This document shows positions 19,358 through 42,709 of a stretch of 64,000 nucleotides of DNA, in pieces. The stretch lies in sequence record NC_042136.1. The stretch is one strand, 5' to 3'. How positions within the stretch are numbered: position 1 is the stretch's first letter; each line of letters begins with the position of its first letter. A program made the position numbers and the translations under genes. The notes below the pieces were generated by a model. That model did no database searches. It was not told the origin of the DNA and saw nothing but the letters and a program-made list of their open reading frames with translations.

Positions 19358-20587
19358 ATGGTTATGAAACATAACCCTTTGATTGCTGCCATGGGTATGA
19401 CACGTGTGGCGGGTTGCGAATCTCTGGATCCTTCTACCGATACGACTGAAGAAATCCCAGCGGTAGTTGAACCTACTGAAGAAGAGAAAGCTTTGTCGGA
19501 AGCTCAAGAAAAGCTGAACGAAGCAGAACAAACTCTAGGTGAAGTTCTCCAACAAGAACAAAATCACCAAGCCACGGTTAAAGAAGCAGAAGAAGCGATT
19601 GCTGGTCTAGAGTCTATGTTCCAAGGTGAGTTCGACGAAACAGTTTATCGTCAACACGTGAACACACTGCAAGGCATCAGTAAACACACACAAATTCCTC
19701 TGTCAGTGACTGTTGATGGCATGGAGTCTTTAAGCTCTGCTCAGATCTACCTGAATACCGTGAATGGTTTAGAGTCTTTCATGGATACATTGAAAGCCGC
19801 AGGTAAGACTATTAAAGAGTTGGTCATTAGAGCTTACAATGCTTTGCTTGACTTACTACGTTCATTTAAGAACTTATTCTTGGGTTTGAACGCTAAACTA
19901 GCAAACACTAAGAAACGTCTTGACGCAACGGACGAGATTAAACCTAAAGCTAAACTGGGTAAGTGGAATAAATACCTAGGTACCGAGCATTTCTCGCCAG
20001 CCGAAATTGGGTCTATGAAAATCTTAACGGAACTAATGGTTAAGGCTTCTGAAGTCAAAATCCGTGATATGGGATCCAAGGACGATCTAGCTCGTAAAAA
20101 GGCGGTTGACGAACTGGCTTATCTCATTGCTAACGAATATGGCTTTATCCAATCTAAAGACGTAGACCGCACAGCTAACAAAGAAACCTACTACATGCGC
20201 ATCGGTAACACGGAATTCGAATATACGGTTCCGATGCGTTCATTACCAGTGGATAGTCTCTTATCGTTTGGTTTTGATCTGAAGTTCATGAAAGACACTA
20301 AAGATTCCGGAGAAGTTAAGGTCTACTTGGACAAACGACACATGGCGGATGACTTAGACGAAACTATCGAATTCGCTAAACACGCGCGTGACACGTTTGA
20401 TGAGCTAGACAAAGTGATCAAACGAGAACGCGATTCTTTGGTAGCAGCCGTCCATAATCCTGAGAGTATGGACCGACCAATGTTATTAGAGGCGATCAAA
20501 ATCAAACGTTCGCTTATTGAAAAGACTGAGCGAAGCATCTTCCATATCTTAGAAGCTAAGAATAGTTTGTTCTCTGCTCACCTTTAG
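19358..20587 (+). CDS. internal head protein, phiKZ_IP-like paralogue
   Basis: AGCE-S, AGLE-S, DGME-S, NGLE-SFMDT; KAKLGKWNKY motif. Confidence 0.75.
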   Translation: MVMKHNPLIAAMGMTRVAGCESLDPSTDTTEEIPAVVEPTEEEKALSEAQEKLNEAEQTLGEVLQQEQNHQATVKEAEEAIAGLESMFQGEFDETVYRQHVNTLQGISKHTQIPLSVTVDGMESLSSAQIYLNTVNGLESFMDTLKAAGKTIKELVIRAYNALLDLLRSFKNLFLGLNAKLANTKKRLDATDEIKPKAKLGKWNKYLGTEHFSPAEIGSMKILTELMVKASEVKIRDMGSKDDLARKKAVDELAYLIANEYGFIQSKDVDRTANKETYYMRIGNTEFEYTVPMRSLPVDSLLSFGFDLKFMKDTKDSGEVKVYLDKRHMADDLDETIEFAKHARDTFDELDKVIKRERDSLVAAVHNPESMDRPMLLEAIKIKRSLIEKTERSIFHILEAKNSLFSAHL

Positions 20588-20732
20588 TCACGTATGCATT
20601 ACAGTAATTATATGTAGAATACTATAGTACTGTAGTGCTACGCTTTTCATCATTACTTCAGTGGTGGTGTTTAGATAATTTAATTAAATTCTCTAGTCAA
20701 AAGACTAAACTAATTTTAAAGGAAACATTGAT

Positions 20733-21959
20733 ATGTCTCAAATTCGTAATATGCTTATGGCTCAAGCTGGCATGGAATCTCTAGATGCAGCTGAAGTTGC
20801 ACAAGTTGAAAAGACAGCTGAAGAAGTAGCTGAGCTAGTAGCAGATAAAGCTGCTGAAGAAATCAAAGCTGAAGTAAATGAACTGGCTGACGAAGTTGAA
20901 GAACTGTCTGAAGAGATCGAAGAGATCGAAGAAGACGTTGAAGAACTTGAAGAATGTGTTGACGGTATGGAAGCGCTGCTTAAAGCAGGTTCTTTCAACG
21001 GTGCTGCATTCGGCCTTCTTTACAACCGTGCAGAAAAACTAAACCGTAAACTTGGTGGCGCTGAAACTGGTGCTGTTGTTGGTGCTGAGTCTCTAGGTGA
21101 CGCAACTTCTGCGACTCTAGCAGCTCGCGCTGGCATGGAAGGCTTCATGGAAACTGCACGCGGCTACAAAGACGCAGCAGTTAAATTCATCATGTCTATG
21201 TACGAATCTCTAAAATCATTCGTTAAAGGCCTGTTCGACAAATCTGTAGCGATCGAAAACCAAGTTAAAGCGACTACCGCTCGTCTTGAGAAAGCTGAGA
21301 AAATGAAAGAAGACGTTAAGCCGGGCAAATGGGCTTCACTGGCTCTACTTCGTGACTCTAACAAACTTCGCGCTATCGTTACCGCAGCTGACGCAGTAGT
21401 TTCTGCTGGTGCTAAACTAACAGCTAACGATGTAGCTGGTTACGCTGGCGCTTACCGTACGCTGAAGAACGCTATCGAGAACCTAGCGAAAGACGGTCAG
21501 TCTAAAGCGAACAAATCTGGTGACGGCACTACTCACCAAATCCACTTCGGTAAAGTTGTTATCAGCGCTACTGTATTCGACGGTGAGATCAAAGAACTTG
21601 CTGACGTAAACAAAGCGGCTAAAGTAACTACTATCTCTTACTCTGTTGCAAAACAAGAAGGCGAAGTTTCTTTCAACGCGCTAACTAAAGAGTCTGCGAA
21701 AGGCTTCCTAAAATCAGCAGCGGCTGATGGCGTAATGCTTAAATCAATGAAAGAAGCGAAAGCAGGTAACGAGAAAGGTCGTGACGAGCTAGTAGCTGCG
21801 CTTAAGAAAGTTGAAGGTAAGCAAGAAGATTGGGTTAAACCATCGATCTCTGCACTGAAAGCTTCTACAGCGATGACTAACCGTGTGTTCACTGTTGTTG
21901 CTAAGATCCTAGGTAACGTTGCTGACGCGAAAATCGCGGCAGTTAAAGCATACCTTTAA
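20733..21959 (+). CDS. major (high-copy) internal head protein, phiKZ_IP-like paralogue
   Basis: AGME-S, DGME-A, GAE-S, AGME-GFMET; codon bias as strong as the capsid gene. Confidence 0.8.
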   Translation: MSQIRNMLMAQAGMESLDAAEVAQVEKTAEEVAELVADKAAEEIKAEVNELADEVEELSEEIEEIEEDVEELEECVDGMEALLKAGSFNGAAFGLLYNRAEKLNRKLGGAETGAVVGAESLGDATSATLAARAGMEGFMETARGYKDAAVKFIMSMYESLKSFVKGLFDKSVAIENQVKATTARLEKAEKMKEDVKPGKWASLALLRDSNKLRAIVTAADAVVSAGAKLTANDVAGYAGAYRTLKNAIENLAKDGQSKANKSGDGTTHQIHFGKVVISATVFDGEIKELADVNKAAKVTTISYSVAKQEGEVSFNALTKESAKGFLKSAAADGVMLKSMKEAKAGNEKGRDELVAALKKVEGKQEDWVKPSISALKASTAMTNRVFTVVAKILGNVADAKIAAVKAYL

Positions 21960-24597: not shown

Positions 24598-24636
24598 CTT
24601 TATTCGATTTTATGATTATTAACTAGGAGAGAGTTT

Positions 24637-29620: not shown

Positions 29621-29644
29621 TTTCAAACCTATATTACTAGGGTG
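29621..29644 (+). promoter_or_regulatory. early promoter
   Basis: TTTCA-AAC-CTATAT-TACTAGG-GTG; contains TATATTAC, the phiKZ early consensus. Confidence 0.7.
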
Positions 29645-29691: not shown

Positions 29692-31269
29692 ATGACTAAG
29701 AAAACAGACAAACCGACTCTTGACACTAGCGAATACTTTGGTCGTAAATTAGGTTTAGTAAAAACGGCAATTGGTGATAGTGAATACTTTGGTCATAAAT
29801 CAGGTTTGACAAAGACAACAATGGAAGTCTACGAAAACCAACACGATAACATTAAAGCGTTGGTACGTACGGTTAATCATCCTCGAGTCGAAGGACAAGG
29901 TGAAATCCGTATCACCGAACCTCTTAAATTGAGTGGGTACATTAAAGACCGAGCGCCAGAAAAGACATGTTGCCTAATCGACGGTCGTCCTGCAACTCCA
30001 GAGCAACTAACCGAATCTGCGACGGTAGGGGATTTATTCCGAATTAAGTTGACTCCAGAATCAGCTACACTGGAATTGGTGAAGTGTTTAGGGACTTGTG
30101 TTTACGCTATTGCAGGTGAACCAGTAGAGTTGATCAAACGCTTGACCGAAGAACTCCAACCTCAAGAAATACACTTCTACCATGGCAACCGAGAGGTCAC
30201 TGAGACAACCATGTGTCACCATGTAAGGCTCGAAGATTCTTTCATGGTGGAAGCGTTCGGTGGGCGCATTAACATCACACTATTGGACGGAGAGAAACAA
30301 CCTAAGGTCTACCGTATGCAGGACACTGACACTTTGGTAGGTCTGTCTTCTTTGTGGGTCGAACATCTTAAGCAAGTGGACGTTGAGAATCCGATGACTC
30401 GATTAAAGGGACGTGCATTAACCACACAAGGGCGTGACGGAAGAACGATAGGTAAAAGCAGTCGTCACTCTATCTACGGTCCACATATTGAGTTCTCTAC
30501 GCGTATTGTGGAAGGTTTCATGACCGAGGAACGAACTGATCAACTTCGTGCCTTAGCTGAAACCCTAGAGTGTTACGTGGGGAACACTAAGTGTGATGTG
30601 GAAGAGTTTCTTCACATCATCGAACCTGATGACATTTTGTTGTTGCAGGTCTTCACCAGTTCTGCTCGTTTGGTGATTAACCAAGCAGTAGGTGTTTTCC
30701 AACACCCAATTAAAGACGTTACAGAAGAAACCAAAAAGGTTGTTCTGAGACGTGCGTGGAGTATGCTCATGAACTCGACCTTTGGTGCCTTTGGAACTCC
30801 GTACACACTAACTGCTCCTAAGACCTACCTTGGACCTAAGATAGCAACATCTCCGGTATTCATTAACTACCTAACCAAAGATGATCTTTTGATTTCTCAT
30901 TCGTTGGGTGCGTCTTCGGCGATCAGTTGTCAACGTGCGGATAAAGAAGATTATTCAGAGTCTAAGTTGTTGGTGAACTGCGAAATCTACCCGACTAACA
31001 ACGACGGCGTGTATACAGACTTGCTTGATAATGAGTTCATCAAAGACTTAACTGACACTTTGGTGGAACGTGATCTAATTCTACCTAATTGGGAGACCAG
31101 AGCTAACCACAACATTCTTAAAAATGATGCTGAGTTCTTTAGCCTGAAACATACCAACCCGGTCGATGGTCTGGATGTGAAGCATGCTCGTGCTAGAGCA
31201 GAAGCCAAAGCTAAACAACCACGTAAAGAACTTTCACCATTAATGAAACACATGTTGAAGCGTCTTTAA
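29692..31269 (+). CDS. early hypothetical protein with PolB motif B/C-like strings
   Basis: 525 aa; LMNSTFGAFG (N361) and IYPTNNDGVY (D438); N-terminal 17-aa duplication. Confidence 0.7.
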   Translation: MTKKTDKPTLDTSEYFGRKLGLVKTAIGDSEYFGHKSGLTKTTMEVYENQHDNIKALVRTVNHPRVEGQGEIRITEPLKLSGYIKDRAPEKTCCLIDGRPATPEQLTESATVGDLFRIKLTPESATLELVKCLGTCVYAIAGEPVELIKRLTEELQPQEIHFYHGNREVTETTMCHHVRLEDSFMVEAFGGRINITLLDGEKQPKVYRMQDTDTLVGLSSLWVEHLKQVDVENPMTRLKGRALTTQGRDGRTIGKSSRHSIYGPHIEFSTRIVEGFMTEERTDQLRALAETLECYVGNTKCDVEEFLHIIEPDDILLLQVFTSSARLVINQAVGVFQHPIKDVTEETKKVVLRRAWSMLMNSTFGAFGTPYTLTAPKTYLGPKIATSPVFINYLTKDDLLISHSLGASSAISCQRADKEDYSESKLLVNCEIYPTNNDGVYTDLLDNEFIKDLTDTLVERDLILPNWETRANHNILKNDAEFFSLKHTNPVDGLDVKHARARAEAKAKQPRKELSPLMKHMLKRL

Positions 31270-31334
31270 TTCAACAAACCGATTTTACCATTATCTCTCT
31301 AAAACTGATTTAAACTATTTAAGGATTTATTGCC

Positions 31335-31706
31335 ATGACTATTAAGAAAGAAGGCACCATGAACCAAGTCAAAATCTTCGCTTTGACACAACTAAGCAGT
31401 TGGTTATACCGTAACCACCGCGTTAAGAGCATCAAGGCGATGGCTTTGGAAGCGAGCTGTTCCCCAACCACCCTTAGCGGTATTAAGAACGGTACCATCA
31501 AGTGTGTGTCTTTAAATCGTACTTTGGATATCATGGATCGTTTGAACATCAACTACGTGATGCAAATCCAACGTCGTAAAGGGGTAACTCATTATTCCTT
31601 TGCAATGGATAAGTACAATGTTCGTAAATCCAGTACAGCGTACCCAGAAGTCGAATACAAAGACGAATTCGATTACGCTCGTCGTATTGCAAACAAAACT
31701 GAATAA
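31335..31706 (+). CDS. XRE/Cro-like helix-turn-helix protein
   Basis: IKAMALEASCSPTTLSGIKNGTIKCVSLNRTLDIMDRL fits the HTH_XRE pattern; SD AAGGA. Confidence 0.65.
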   Translation: MTIKKEGTMNQVKIFALTQLSSWLYRNHRVKSIKAMALEASCSPTTLSGIKNGTIKCVSLNRTLDIMDRLNINYVMQIQRRKGVTHYSFAMDKYNVRKSSTAYPEVEYKDEFDYARRIANKTE

Positions 31707-31761
31707 CCTCTCAGAATCGATTACAGGAGCTCCTACACGGGGTTCCTGTATGGAGACCATT

Positions 31762-31941
31762 ATGATTAAACCTGTTTGTCAAACTAACCCTATTAATGAA
31801 CACCGTGTTAAAGAGAAACCTAAATCTAACACTACGGATTTCGATCAAGTATTGGGTAAAGTTATGCGTGTTGTTCATGAAGAAAAAGAATTATTTTTAA
31901 CTGAGAAATCTATTCTAATGGGGGAGGGGGTAAAGACTTGA
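31762..31941 (+). CDS. small hypothetical protein (59 aa)
   Basis: 3' part of track ORF 31600-31941; SD GGAG upstream of ATG 31762. Confidence 0.55.
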   Translation: MIKPVCQTNPINEHRVKEKPKSNTTDFDQVLGKVMRVVHEEKELFLTEKSILMGEGVKT

Positions 31942-31952
31942 AAACATCGAAG

Positions 31953-32094
31953 ATAATTTAATTAATATTAATATTAATATACTTTAGTATAAGTAAATAA
32001 ATATATATTAGTTAAATATACCTTAGAGTGAACAACGTGAACGGTGAGTGTTGTAGTACGAAGTACGTAGACACGTAACAAAGGTATTTAACTA
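31953..32094. other. AT-rich tract plus branched inverted-repeat element (origin-like)
   Basis: 64 of 68 nt A/T at 31953-32020 with (ATTAAT)x3; outer IR 32009-32024/32081-32094 enclosing two smaller hairpins. Confidence 0.5.
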
Positions 32095-32140
32095 TACCTA
32101 ACCCATGACCTTTTTAACTATCTGAGAAAGAGATACTATC

Positions 32141-32995
32141 ATGAAACAAGATCAAAACATCTTTACTACTAAATACGCTTCTAAGTTTGAACAAGAAATA
32201 GTGAAACAAGAACCTACTCATTATAAACTTTATTTGCGCATTCTTAATTTCGATTACTGGTTCCGTGAATCAGATTGCAATGCAACATGGCGTGGTGGTT
32301 TAGAATCAGAAAAAGAAATCCTAGAGTCTTTAGATCAAGCTAAAGACCATCCTGATTATTACATCCTACAAGAACTATGGGCAAGCAACGGAGATCGTGG
32401 TCTACTAAGTTGTACTACTAACCCGTTTGAAATCTATGCTGAACGATACAAAGACGAGTCCATGGGGATGTACCATTTCTTGAAAACATTAGACCTACTA
32501 GGGATTACAGAAACACAAGCCGCTGAAATGTTACGAGCTGCTCGATTTATAGCACGGTTCTTATTGGAACGAGAATCAATGGAATCCTTCTTACCAGTCT
32601 ATCCTAACTACTTAGTTTATACACCACACCTAGGAGGTAAACGAGAAGCAGGACGTTATACGAGTAAGATGGCGTTATCTAACAAACTACACCGTTTCAT
32701 GAACAAAGGGACAGAACGTGTCACTTGGGGAGACTTCGATGCCTTTGGTCGACTATGCTCTATTGCGGGTACTACAAACACAACTCAGTTCAACGCTGAT
32801 CCTGATGATGAAAGAGAACTGCTGTTATGTTACATCAAGGGTTGTTATTTCTCAGCGCCGTTCTACATTCACGAAGAACTCCGTACTAAGATCAGTCGTA
32901 CAGACTTGCGTTTCATCCGTCTGGTTAGAGCAGTACTATCGAACACTGCTGATATTAGCGAACTCCGTAATACGAAGTATACCGCGAGAGTCTGA
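32141..32995 (+). CDS. hypothetical protein
   Basis: 284-aa ORF with SD. Confidence 0.8.
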   Translation: MKQDQNIFTTKYASKFEQEIVKQEPTHYKLYLRILNFDYWFRESDCNATWRGGLESEKEILESLDQAKDHPDYYILQELWASNGDRGLLSCTTNPFEIYAERYKDESMGMYHFLKTLDLLGITETQAAEMLRAARFIARFLLERESMESFLPVYPNYLVYTPHLGGKREAGRYTSKMALSNKLHRFMNKGTERVTWGDFDAFGRLCSIAGTTNTTQFNADPDDERELLLCYIKGCYFSAPFYIHEELRTKISRTDLRFIRLVRAVLSNTADISELRNTKYTARV

Positions 32996-32997
32996 TC

Positions 32998-33507
32998 ATG
33001 GATGTGAAACACTACGAACGTGATTGGTTGACGTCTGATGAAGGGTTGTTGTCATGTGCAGAATTCTTCATCCGTACTGAGTACAAAGCTAAGTATTATA
33101 CCATCGGGTTTAGCATCAAGAACCGGAATCAATGTGGCGTCTTTTTGATGATCGATCGAGATGGTAAAAAGGCTTCGATTAAGCAGTTCAGAGCCCATGA
33201 GAAATACTTGGAAGATTTAATCTCGACATTAGATCAAATTCATGATGTATTGATTAAATCTGTGGGCCGCGGGTATGATACAAAGAAATGGTCGGTTGAT
33301 CACGTCGACATGTTTAGTCTCACCACTATCACCATGGAGTCGGTAACTGGCAGTGCACATCGGATGTTATTCCAAATAGGGACAAAGACGGCCTTTTTCA
33401 ATTATGACACGCAAACCATGATTGATCTGGTGTTGACATTAAGTGATATGGTTAAGAACCAACATCGTAAAATGAAGGGGTTGATTGTTCATGAAGAAAC
33501 TAAGTAG
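32998..33507 (+). CDS. hypothetical protein, paralogue of next gene
   Basis: 169 aa; KYLEDLISTLDQIHDVL. Confidence 0.75.
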   Translation: MDVKHYERDWLTSDEGLLSCAEFFIRTEYKAKYYTIGFSIKNRNQCGVFLMIDRDGKKASIKQFRAHEKYLEDLISTLDQIHDVLIKSVGRGYDTKKWSVDHVDMFSLTTITMESVTGSAHRMLFQIGTKTAFFNYDTQTMIDLVLTLSDMVKNQHRKMKGLIVHEETK

Positions 33508-42685: not shown

Positions 42686-42709
42686 TTTCAGGTCTATATT
42701 ATCCAAGTG
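42686..42709 (+). promoter_or_regulatory. early promoter
   Basis: TTTCA-GGT-CTATAT-TATCCAA-GTG. Confidence 0.65.

Follow-up and report, generated by a model that had tools for sequence, protein, structure and literature searches.

The window analyzed here is a 64,000 nt stretch of the 236,053 bp genome of Vibrio phage VP4B (Gorgonvirinae, Tidunavirus). Window positions are genome positions minus 124000. The Gorgonvirinae are counted in the literature on nucleus-forming phages, where the VP4B relatives Aphrodite1 and pTD1 are named. The longest non-coding gap of the window, as the preliminary description had noted, is at positions 31942–32140 if the annotated small open reading frame gp132 is taken as its edge, or at 31879–32140 by a cruder gene call. 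The gap lies between gp132 and gp133 and the neighboring genes are all on the + strand. gp133 (positions 32141–32995, + strand) encodes a fast-evolving protein of 284 aa that belongs to phrog_27923 and has no Pfam match. Elsewhere in the VP4B genome a crude gene call gives three larger non-coding gaps of 552–661 nt, at genome positions 20091–20751, 79340–79903 and 100232–100783.

The locus in the window, termed c1, is syntenic in phages pTD1, phiKT1028, phiKT1019, PDCC-1, Aphrodite1, USC-1 and 2 TSL-2019, and was found in 5 TSL-2019 by blastn. A 1.2 kb query centered on the gap gives a cross-genus DNA match that is confined to about 100 nt of non-coding sequence, with the flanking coding sequence unmatched. 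A Blast search of the gap against the whole VP4B genome shows a second copy, c2, at genome positions 83932–84040, in the 329 nt that separate gp063 from gp064, with three AraC-type regulator genes downstream. c2 is the better preserved of the two VP4B copies. A covariance model detects exactly two copies in VP4B (E-values of 4e-29 and 1e-21), with no further hit at E ≤ 10, and recovers the pair in every relative tested. c1 and c2 are present, at fixed syntenic places, in 9/9 sequenced Gorgonvirinae.

The 5′ part of the c1 gap contains several features that precede the structured element. A two-part promoter-like motif is at positions 31894–31920 (+ strand) and consists of TTTTTAACTG, 7–8 nt, CTATTCT and TG; it is the putative promoter of the leader. 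This is followed by a G5-A-G5 run and AAAG at positions 31919–31935 (+ strand), which are conserved in relatives and are candidates for the first transcribed bases. An AT-rich leader segment at positions 31943–31969 (+ strand), with TTAATTAATAT at its 3′ end, varies little or not at all among the eight c1 loci. Between this segment and the structured element, positions 31970–32007 (+ strand) are an AT-rich insertion specific to the VP4B lineage, which is missing from pTD1, phiKT1028, PDCC-1 and Aphrodite1.

The A/T content of positions 31953–32020 is 64/68, and ATTAAT is found three times in succession at positions 31961–31978; both were correctly given in the preliminary description, where the tract was called unwinding-like. 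The tract is conserved in part: about 28 nt of it are common to relatives, and about 40 nt are the VP4B-lineage insertion, which is not a conserved unwinding element. The unwinding-like tract is largely a recent insertion, since these approximately 40 nt are missing from the relatives and a metagenome contig of an Aphrodite-type relative is without positions 31966–32009. There is a direct repeat inside the VP4B gap (positions 31973–88 and 31997–32012), and from its sequence the insertion at positions 31970–32007 appears to be a decayed duplicate of the 5′ half of the element itself. The c2 copy has neither the AT tract nor the G-run.

The element itself is predicted to fold into a three-way junction. 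In the aligned relatives the order from 5′ to 3′ is stem P1, AGA, hairpin P2, GGUGA, hairpin P3, a joining strand of 5–8 nt that is often GAUAA-like, and P1′. All parts of the VP4B c1 copy are on the + strand. The 5′ arm of P1 is at positions 32009–32024 and its partner, the 3′ arm, at 32081–32094. An outer stem had been recognized here before, and it is borne out by the perfect pairing of positions 32009–32018 with 32085–32094 and by the adjacent CCTT (32021–32024) and AAGG (32081–32084). In c2 the P1 arm has an unrelated sequence that also pairs. The first junction strand, AGA (positions 32025–32027), is invariant in 16/16 copies. P2 (positions 32028–32042) is truncated in VP4B to a GUGAAC-AAC-GUGAAC hairpin with tandem G.A mismatches; in relatives it is 26–36 nt long. 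The second junction strand, GGUGA (positions 32043–32047), is part of ACGGTGAGT, which is likewise invariant in 16/16 copies. P3 (positions 32048–32074) consists of GUGU, an internal loop, GUAC-GAA-GUAC, an internal loop and ACAC, and the third junction strand is GUAACA (positions 32075–32080), which is G(G)AUAA in relatives.

The GTAC-GAA-GTAC sequence that had been pointed out earlier is at positions 32056–32066, within P3, and the C-GAA-G mini-hairpin occupies positions 32059–32063. The other inner stem proposed at that time, ACAAC with GTTGT, takes no part in the minimum-energy fold and is missing in relatives; the conserved arms are P2 and P3. These arms display C-GAA-G-type triloops and G.A-rich internal loops, and the unpaired AGA, GGUGA and G-AUAA strands are conserved. 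The GAA loop is replaced by GCA in phiKT1028 and by GGA in several c1 copies. In relatives with a short, c1-type P3, Watson-Crick pairs are found where the long P3 has G.A or U.U.

Taken alone, the VP4B c1 sequence does not fold clearly beyond chance as RNA (z = -0.85; 44 of 200 shuffles are as good), and as DNA it is modestly better than shuffles (z = -2.09). The significance of the fold is derived solely from the relatives. The minimum free energy fold gives the same junction in 12/12 distinct sequences, with z values of -3.2 to -5.8, and -1.9 for VP4B c1. P1 of c1 and P1 of c2 are unrelated apart from the inner CCUU/AAGG, yet 14–17 pairs are formed in both. Within c1 the P1 stem is invariant, and within c2 GAGUAC/GUACUC is exchanged for UAGUAC/GUACUA. 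The base of P2 in c1 changes from GUAUGUA/UACAUAC to GUAUAUA/UAUAUAC, A-U becomes G-C between the two types of P3, and a small hairpin 3′ of c1 flips from GGUC/GACC to GACC/GGUC.

When seven c1 loci are aligned by MAFFT alone, RNAalifold recovers P1, P2, P3 and the 3′ hairpin, with six pairs changed on both sides. In this alignment 97% of the cells are paired, compared to 30%–43% with slid partners. The six double-sided changes are matched in 2 of 500 shuffles, and the covariation score of 0.138, as against 0.083, is reached in 0 of 500. When c1 and c2 are aligned together by fitting to the model, 76% of the cells are paired compared to 71.5% in shuffles; this alignment misregisters P1 and P2 of c1, so that its pair counts understate the structure. 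The comparative sample consists of 12 distinct sequences from one subfamily, and the case is made by several independent compensatory changes rather than by a formal test.

The + strand folds better than the - strand by 3.4–10.7 kcal/mol in 12/12 sequences. This advantage fits the presence of G.U pairs, tandem G.A pairs and purine-rich loops on the gene-sense strand. Cross-phage identity is 0.88–0.89 in the junction versus 0.42–0.50 in the adjoining spacer, and in c2 the conservation collapses directly after P1. The element is thus retained with compensatory changes, and the possibility raised earlier, that it is unconserved and merely a promoter region of gp133, is contradicted. The covariation is compatible with RNA and with single-stranded DNA of the + strand alike; RNA is the most likely form. 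From sequence and structural modelling, the gap most likely specifies a structured RNA domain that is complete in itself and about 95–110 nt long, in which a long P1 closes a three-way junction.

Searches for known families and for further copies were extended to several libraries. Rfam 15 has no family that matches within the gap at E ≤ 10. Three weak Rfam matches in positions 31000–33000 are outside of the gap and are snoRNA noise, and ARAGORN finds no tRNA or tmRNA genes in the same region. In five outgroup jumbo phages, whose DnaB identity is 65%–48%, the best covariance model hit has E = 1 and is noise. A pattern scan of IMG/VR shows no real further element among 25 loci, ten of which are known phages. 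Two single matches inside long open reading frames are due to chance, as is a family of eight contigs, in which the pattern of substitutions resembles that of coding sequence. Four further contigs, also chance matches, form a family that looks like a group I intron encoding a GIY-YIG endonuclease; the anchor words have a different topology there. One lone pattern hit (L025) is assigned neither to the known phages nor to the chance classes. The unrelated contigs that share the anchor words have no Rfam match. With a tighter pattern, neither JGI metagenomes nor a set of 185,579 genomes of bacteria and archaea gave a real match. No RNA-seq run was found to contain this phage, and DNA contigs aligned to the region showed natural variants only. 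As far as these libraries go the element is a new family, most likely of RNA.

The apparent group I intron is at L019:8447–8939 (- strand) and L031:1142–1634, and also in L033 and L038; it has an R-like box, GTTCAGAGACTA, and the GIY-YIG endonuclease open reading frame is in L019. These intron-like contigs are not called at Rfam gathering thresholds.

The VP4B c1 copy is the most degenerate of all copies. Its P2 is a 15 nt hairpin from which 12 nt are missing; these 12 nt are present in an almost identical phage from an aquaculture metagenome, where they make the base of P2 Watson-Crick paired throughout. A 39 nt stretch of c1 (positions 32037–32075), which includes all of P3, is identical to VP4B c2. 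The situation in phiKT1028 is similar, where a private GCA loop is found in both copies. The identity of P3 within these two genomes is consistent with gene conversion between copies and shows, at the level of sequence, that the two P3 arm types are interchangeable. By its sequence, VP4B c1 is a partly decayed recombinant with a c2-like P3, a deleted P2 tip and an expanded AT tract.

The genes next to the two copies diverge rapidly. Protein identity to relatives is 38%–47% for gp133, 60%–76% for gp064 and 94% for the DnaB-like helicase. The low identity of gp133 holds even within the genus. The gp133 and gp064 proteins are unrelated to each other, and searches of Pfam, PHROG and Atlas gave no informative result for either. 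The gp133 allele class tracks the variant of the 3′ half of c1: VP4B goes with phiKT1028 (47% aa identity) and not with its own genus (pTD1, 38%). This linkage suggests cassette exchange at the element, as judged from the sequences.

The two-part motif upstream of c1 is also found elsewhere in the form TTA(A)CTG, 7–8 nt, a TAT-rich box and then TG, with fixed spacing. In all phages checked it precedes c1, c2 and a third locus, and there is a fourth VP4B site at genome position 77473. From the sequence we infer that it is a rare promoter class. Of five phages checked, four have two G5-A-G5 runs per genome and phiKT1028 has one. In VP4B the two sites are in the c1 gap and upstream of gp176 (genome position 206426), and at c1 and the third locus the two-part motif runs into the G5-A-G5 tract. 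The third locus is at genome positions 206404–206440 (L054:1479–1515), before gp176, and has no junction; its motif and G-run are conserved in pTD1, Aphrodite1 and PDCC-1. In addition, TTTTTAACT...CTGAGAAA at positions 32111–32138, just before the gp133 start, is 75% identical over 20 nt to the motif at 31894–31917. This echo is partly common to phiKT1028.

The gap was described before as being without the terminator-plus-promoter pattern of other spacers. This is correct: positions 31300–32400 have no terminator-like site and the gap has no consensus early promoter. The early promoters of VP4B, of the TATATTAC class that serves the virion RNA polymerase in chimalliviruses, display a T-rich region, C-TATATTA-Y, and GTG 4 nt later. 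TATATTA[CT] is found at 20 sites on the VP4B + strand; 18 of these are intergenic and about 15 of the 18 have the wider consensus. The sites in the window are at positions 29630–29637 and 42695–42702 (genome positions 153630 and 166695) and there are about 13 more elsewhere. The early motifs of phiKZ and 201phi2-1 match this family (PMC7058600; also PMC8244752, PMC11512511). Several candidate sites at the two copies were rejected. TATATTAG at positions 32004–32011 is without the flanking consensus and is not kept in relatives. The start of the junction (the shared AGAGTG) is not a disguised early promoter, since the upstream box fails to align and c2 is without it. The word TCGAAGA, which is upstream of both copies, occurs often in coding sequence, and chance alone would be expected to give a 7-mer match.

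At c2 an invariant early promoter, TCTATATTAC, is located between the junction and gp064. A bulged GC hairpin with a U-run is found by RNAalifold between the two-part motif and the c2 junction; it is not called by a simple terminator scan. The same scan shows no terminator after either copy, and between c1 and the gp133 start codon no separate gp133 promoter was recognized. As to other hairpins, (C)GATTTTATG is found directly 3′ of GC hairpins at window positions 24607–24614 (genome position 148607) and at other intergenic sites. In Aphrodite-type phages, intergenic GC hairpins with a CUUAG-type loop are present upstream of the gene before c2 (L012:330–380, L013:325–375, L014:320–370), and these are probably terminators of a local style.

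The explanation favored here, which is considered fairly probable, is that the gp133 transcript has the element in its leader as a structured RNA domain, downstream of a rare conserved promoter-like motif, and that the element acts on the transcripts that carry it. The claim is based on sequence comparison and modelling; we infer from these that the molecule is RNA, where the transcript would start and what its role may be. The element would be transcribed together with the + strand genes from the two-part motif, which is about 110 nt upstream in VP4B and about 70 nt upstream in relatives. c1 would then lie within the leader of the gp133 message, and its paralogue c2 is found ahead of gp064. 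A factor of the phage or the host may recognize the surface formed by the invariant junction and loops and, once bound, would control how the transcript carrying the element is processed or translated, or how stable it is. A simple cis-leader role is less tidy at c2, because there the early promoter follows the junction and the hairpin with its U-run precedes it.

In phages 201phi2-1 and phiKZ a conserved folded RNA, sRNA005 of 201phi2-1 and the gp182 leader of phiKZ, is located upstream of a conserved tail gene (PMC11512511). Like that RNA, the VP4B element is a conserved fold in a leader, here a putative one, of a nucleus-forming jumbo phage and was found by means of synteny and shared structure. 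The two are set apart by their description, as the VP4B element is before two fast-evolving genes and has two paralogous copies. The put sites of phage HK022, putL and putR, are two paralogous RNAs with two hairpins each that act on the host RNA polymerase to suppress termination. The VP4B element resembles these in having two compact copies per genome, in transcription sense and downstream of promoters, with structure conserved more than sequence. However the put RNAs are two adjacent stem-loops with no closing P1, whereas the VP4B element is closed by a long P1. In addition VP4B uses its own polymerases, and the terminator-like hairpin of c2 is upstream of the element. The general layout of purine-class riboswitches is also similar, i.e. 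a P1 that closes a junction, joining strands that are the most conserved part and two hairpin arms. Unlike these, the VP4B element has 3 nt loops that give no loop-loop contact, a P1 of 14–17 bp that greatly exceeds the P1 of a switch in length, no Rfam match and no expression platform that was recognized. A hammerhead ribozyme was considered and rejected: the junction strands AGA, GGUGA and G-AUAA differ from the core CUGANGA/GAAA, and there is no Rfam match.

A possible though clearly less likely explanation is that c1 and c2 are paralogous and encode a small non-coding RNA that stands alone. Processed free, this RNA would not act on the adjacent gene but in trans, perhaps titrating an RNA-binding protein of host or phage as a decoy or sponge. 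The module has a closing P1 of its own and is present in two unrelated contexts, the gene after c2 has its own early promoter after the element, and conservation there ends where P1 ends. Small RNAs derived from 5′ untranslated regions are reported in the phiKZ-like phage 201phi2-1 (PMC11512511). However neither copy is followed by a terminator, and c1 has no recognized separate promoter for gp133.

The preliminary description had left the choice between a replication origin or priming site, a genome-anchoring site and a non-coding RNA. Of these, the non-coding RNA is favored by the conserved fold, the + strand bias and the promoter-like motif upstream, and the origin gains no support from the AT insertion, from c2, which has no AT tract, or from the skew, which has no inflection at either copy. 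The element is probably not a replication origin. As a DNA-level element it would be an origin or priming site at which the unwound + strand folds into a branched hairpin, perhaps primed by transcription, and this is unlikely. A promoter-like motif, the G5-A-G5 run and an AT-rich stretch do precede c1, the DNA fold of VP4B c1 gives z = -2.09, and two dispersed copies would suit multiple origins. C-GAA-G loops, as in d(GCGAAGC) hairpins, are very stable in single-stranded DNA; the GAA loop is nevertheless GCA or GGA in some copies. The AT tract amounts to about 28 nt in relatives, c2 lacks it together with the G-run, and the third G-run locus is without the junction. Invariant unpaired junction bases and G.A loops conserved on one strand are typical of functional RNA, which counts against an origin. 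The cumulative GC-skew of the genome, which had been suggested as a check, rises steadily and has no turn at 83.9 or 156.0 kb; skew here follows gene orientation and is weak evidence.

A transcription-primed origin has known parallels. G-rich RNA-DNA hybrids matter in ColE1 and at mitochondrial CSB II. As in T4 oriF/oriG and ColE1 RNA II, a promoter-like motif, an AT stretch, a G-run near the putative start and a folded transcript are found at c1. Unlike these, the AT tract is mostly lineage-specific, c2 is without the G-run and AT tract, and there is no skew signal. By this analogy the motif, G-run, AT leader and junction would together make up an origin of a nucleus-forming phage, where a transcript that begins at the motif forms a stable hybrid and its folded part sets the primer end, at two or three sites per genome; this is regarded as improbable. 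The origin reading is corrected here in that the AT tract that prompted it is mostly a recent insertion.

It is also improbable that the element is primarily a recombination-prone regulatory cassette, or the remnant of a selfish element, that shuffles adjacent variable genes. PeSL cassettes of T4-type phages are an example of such modules and consist of many short copies with an early promoter and a simple stem-loop. Like PeSL, the VP4B copies are repeated intergenic regulatory modules beside variable genes and show recombination between copies; unlike PeSL, there are two copies and these are branched and have invariant junction bases. The identity of P3 between copies within VP4B and within phiKT1028, the association of the c1 3′-half class with the gp133 allele rather than with the genus, and the rapid evolution of both downstream genes relative to DnaB are all in line with such a cassette. 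However each of the nine phages has just the two copies, and these keep the same syntenic positions, there is no transposase or endonuclease nearby, and the strongly conserved unpaired bases argue for a function beyond recombination homology.

That the gap is nothing more than an AT-rich promoter region of gp133 with a chance inverted repeat is very improbable: the VP4B copy alone is indeed no better than shuffles as RNA and TATATTAG resembles an early-promoter box, but that box is without flanks and unconserved and its start, about 10 nt downstream, would fall inside P1, and the conservation, the compensatory changes and a second copy with a different P1 contradict it.

An RNA domain in the leader of the gp133 transcript may have significance for the biology of these phages. 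A conserved element of about 100 nt is kept in two fixed places in all known members of the subfamily while the adjoining genes diverge to 38%–76% identity, which points to a function under strong selection. Regulation at the RNA level is little known in nucleus-forming jumbo phages, which transcribe with their own polymerases. The two fast-evolving genes next to the element are candidates for host-interaction functions, and their expression may be controlled by it.
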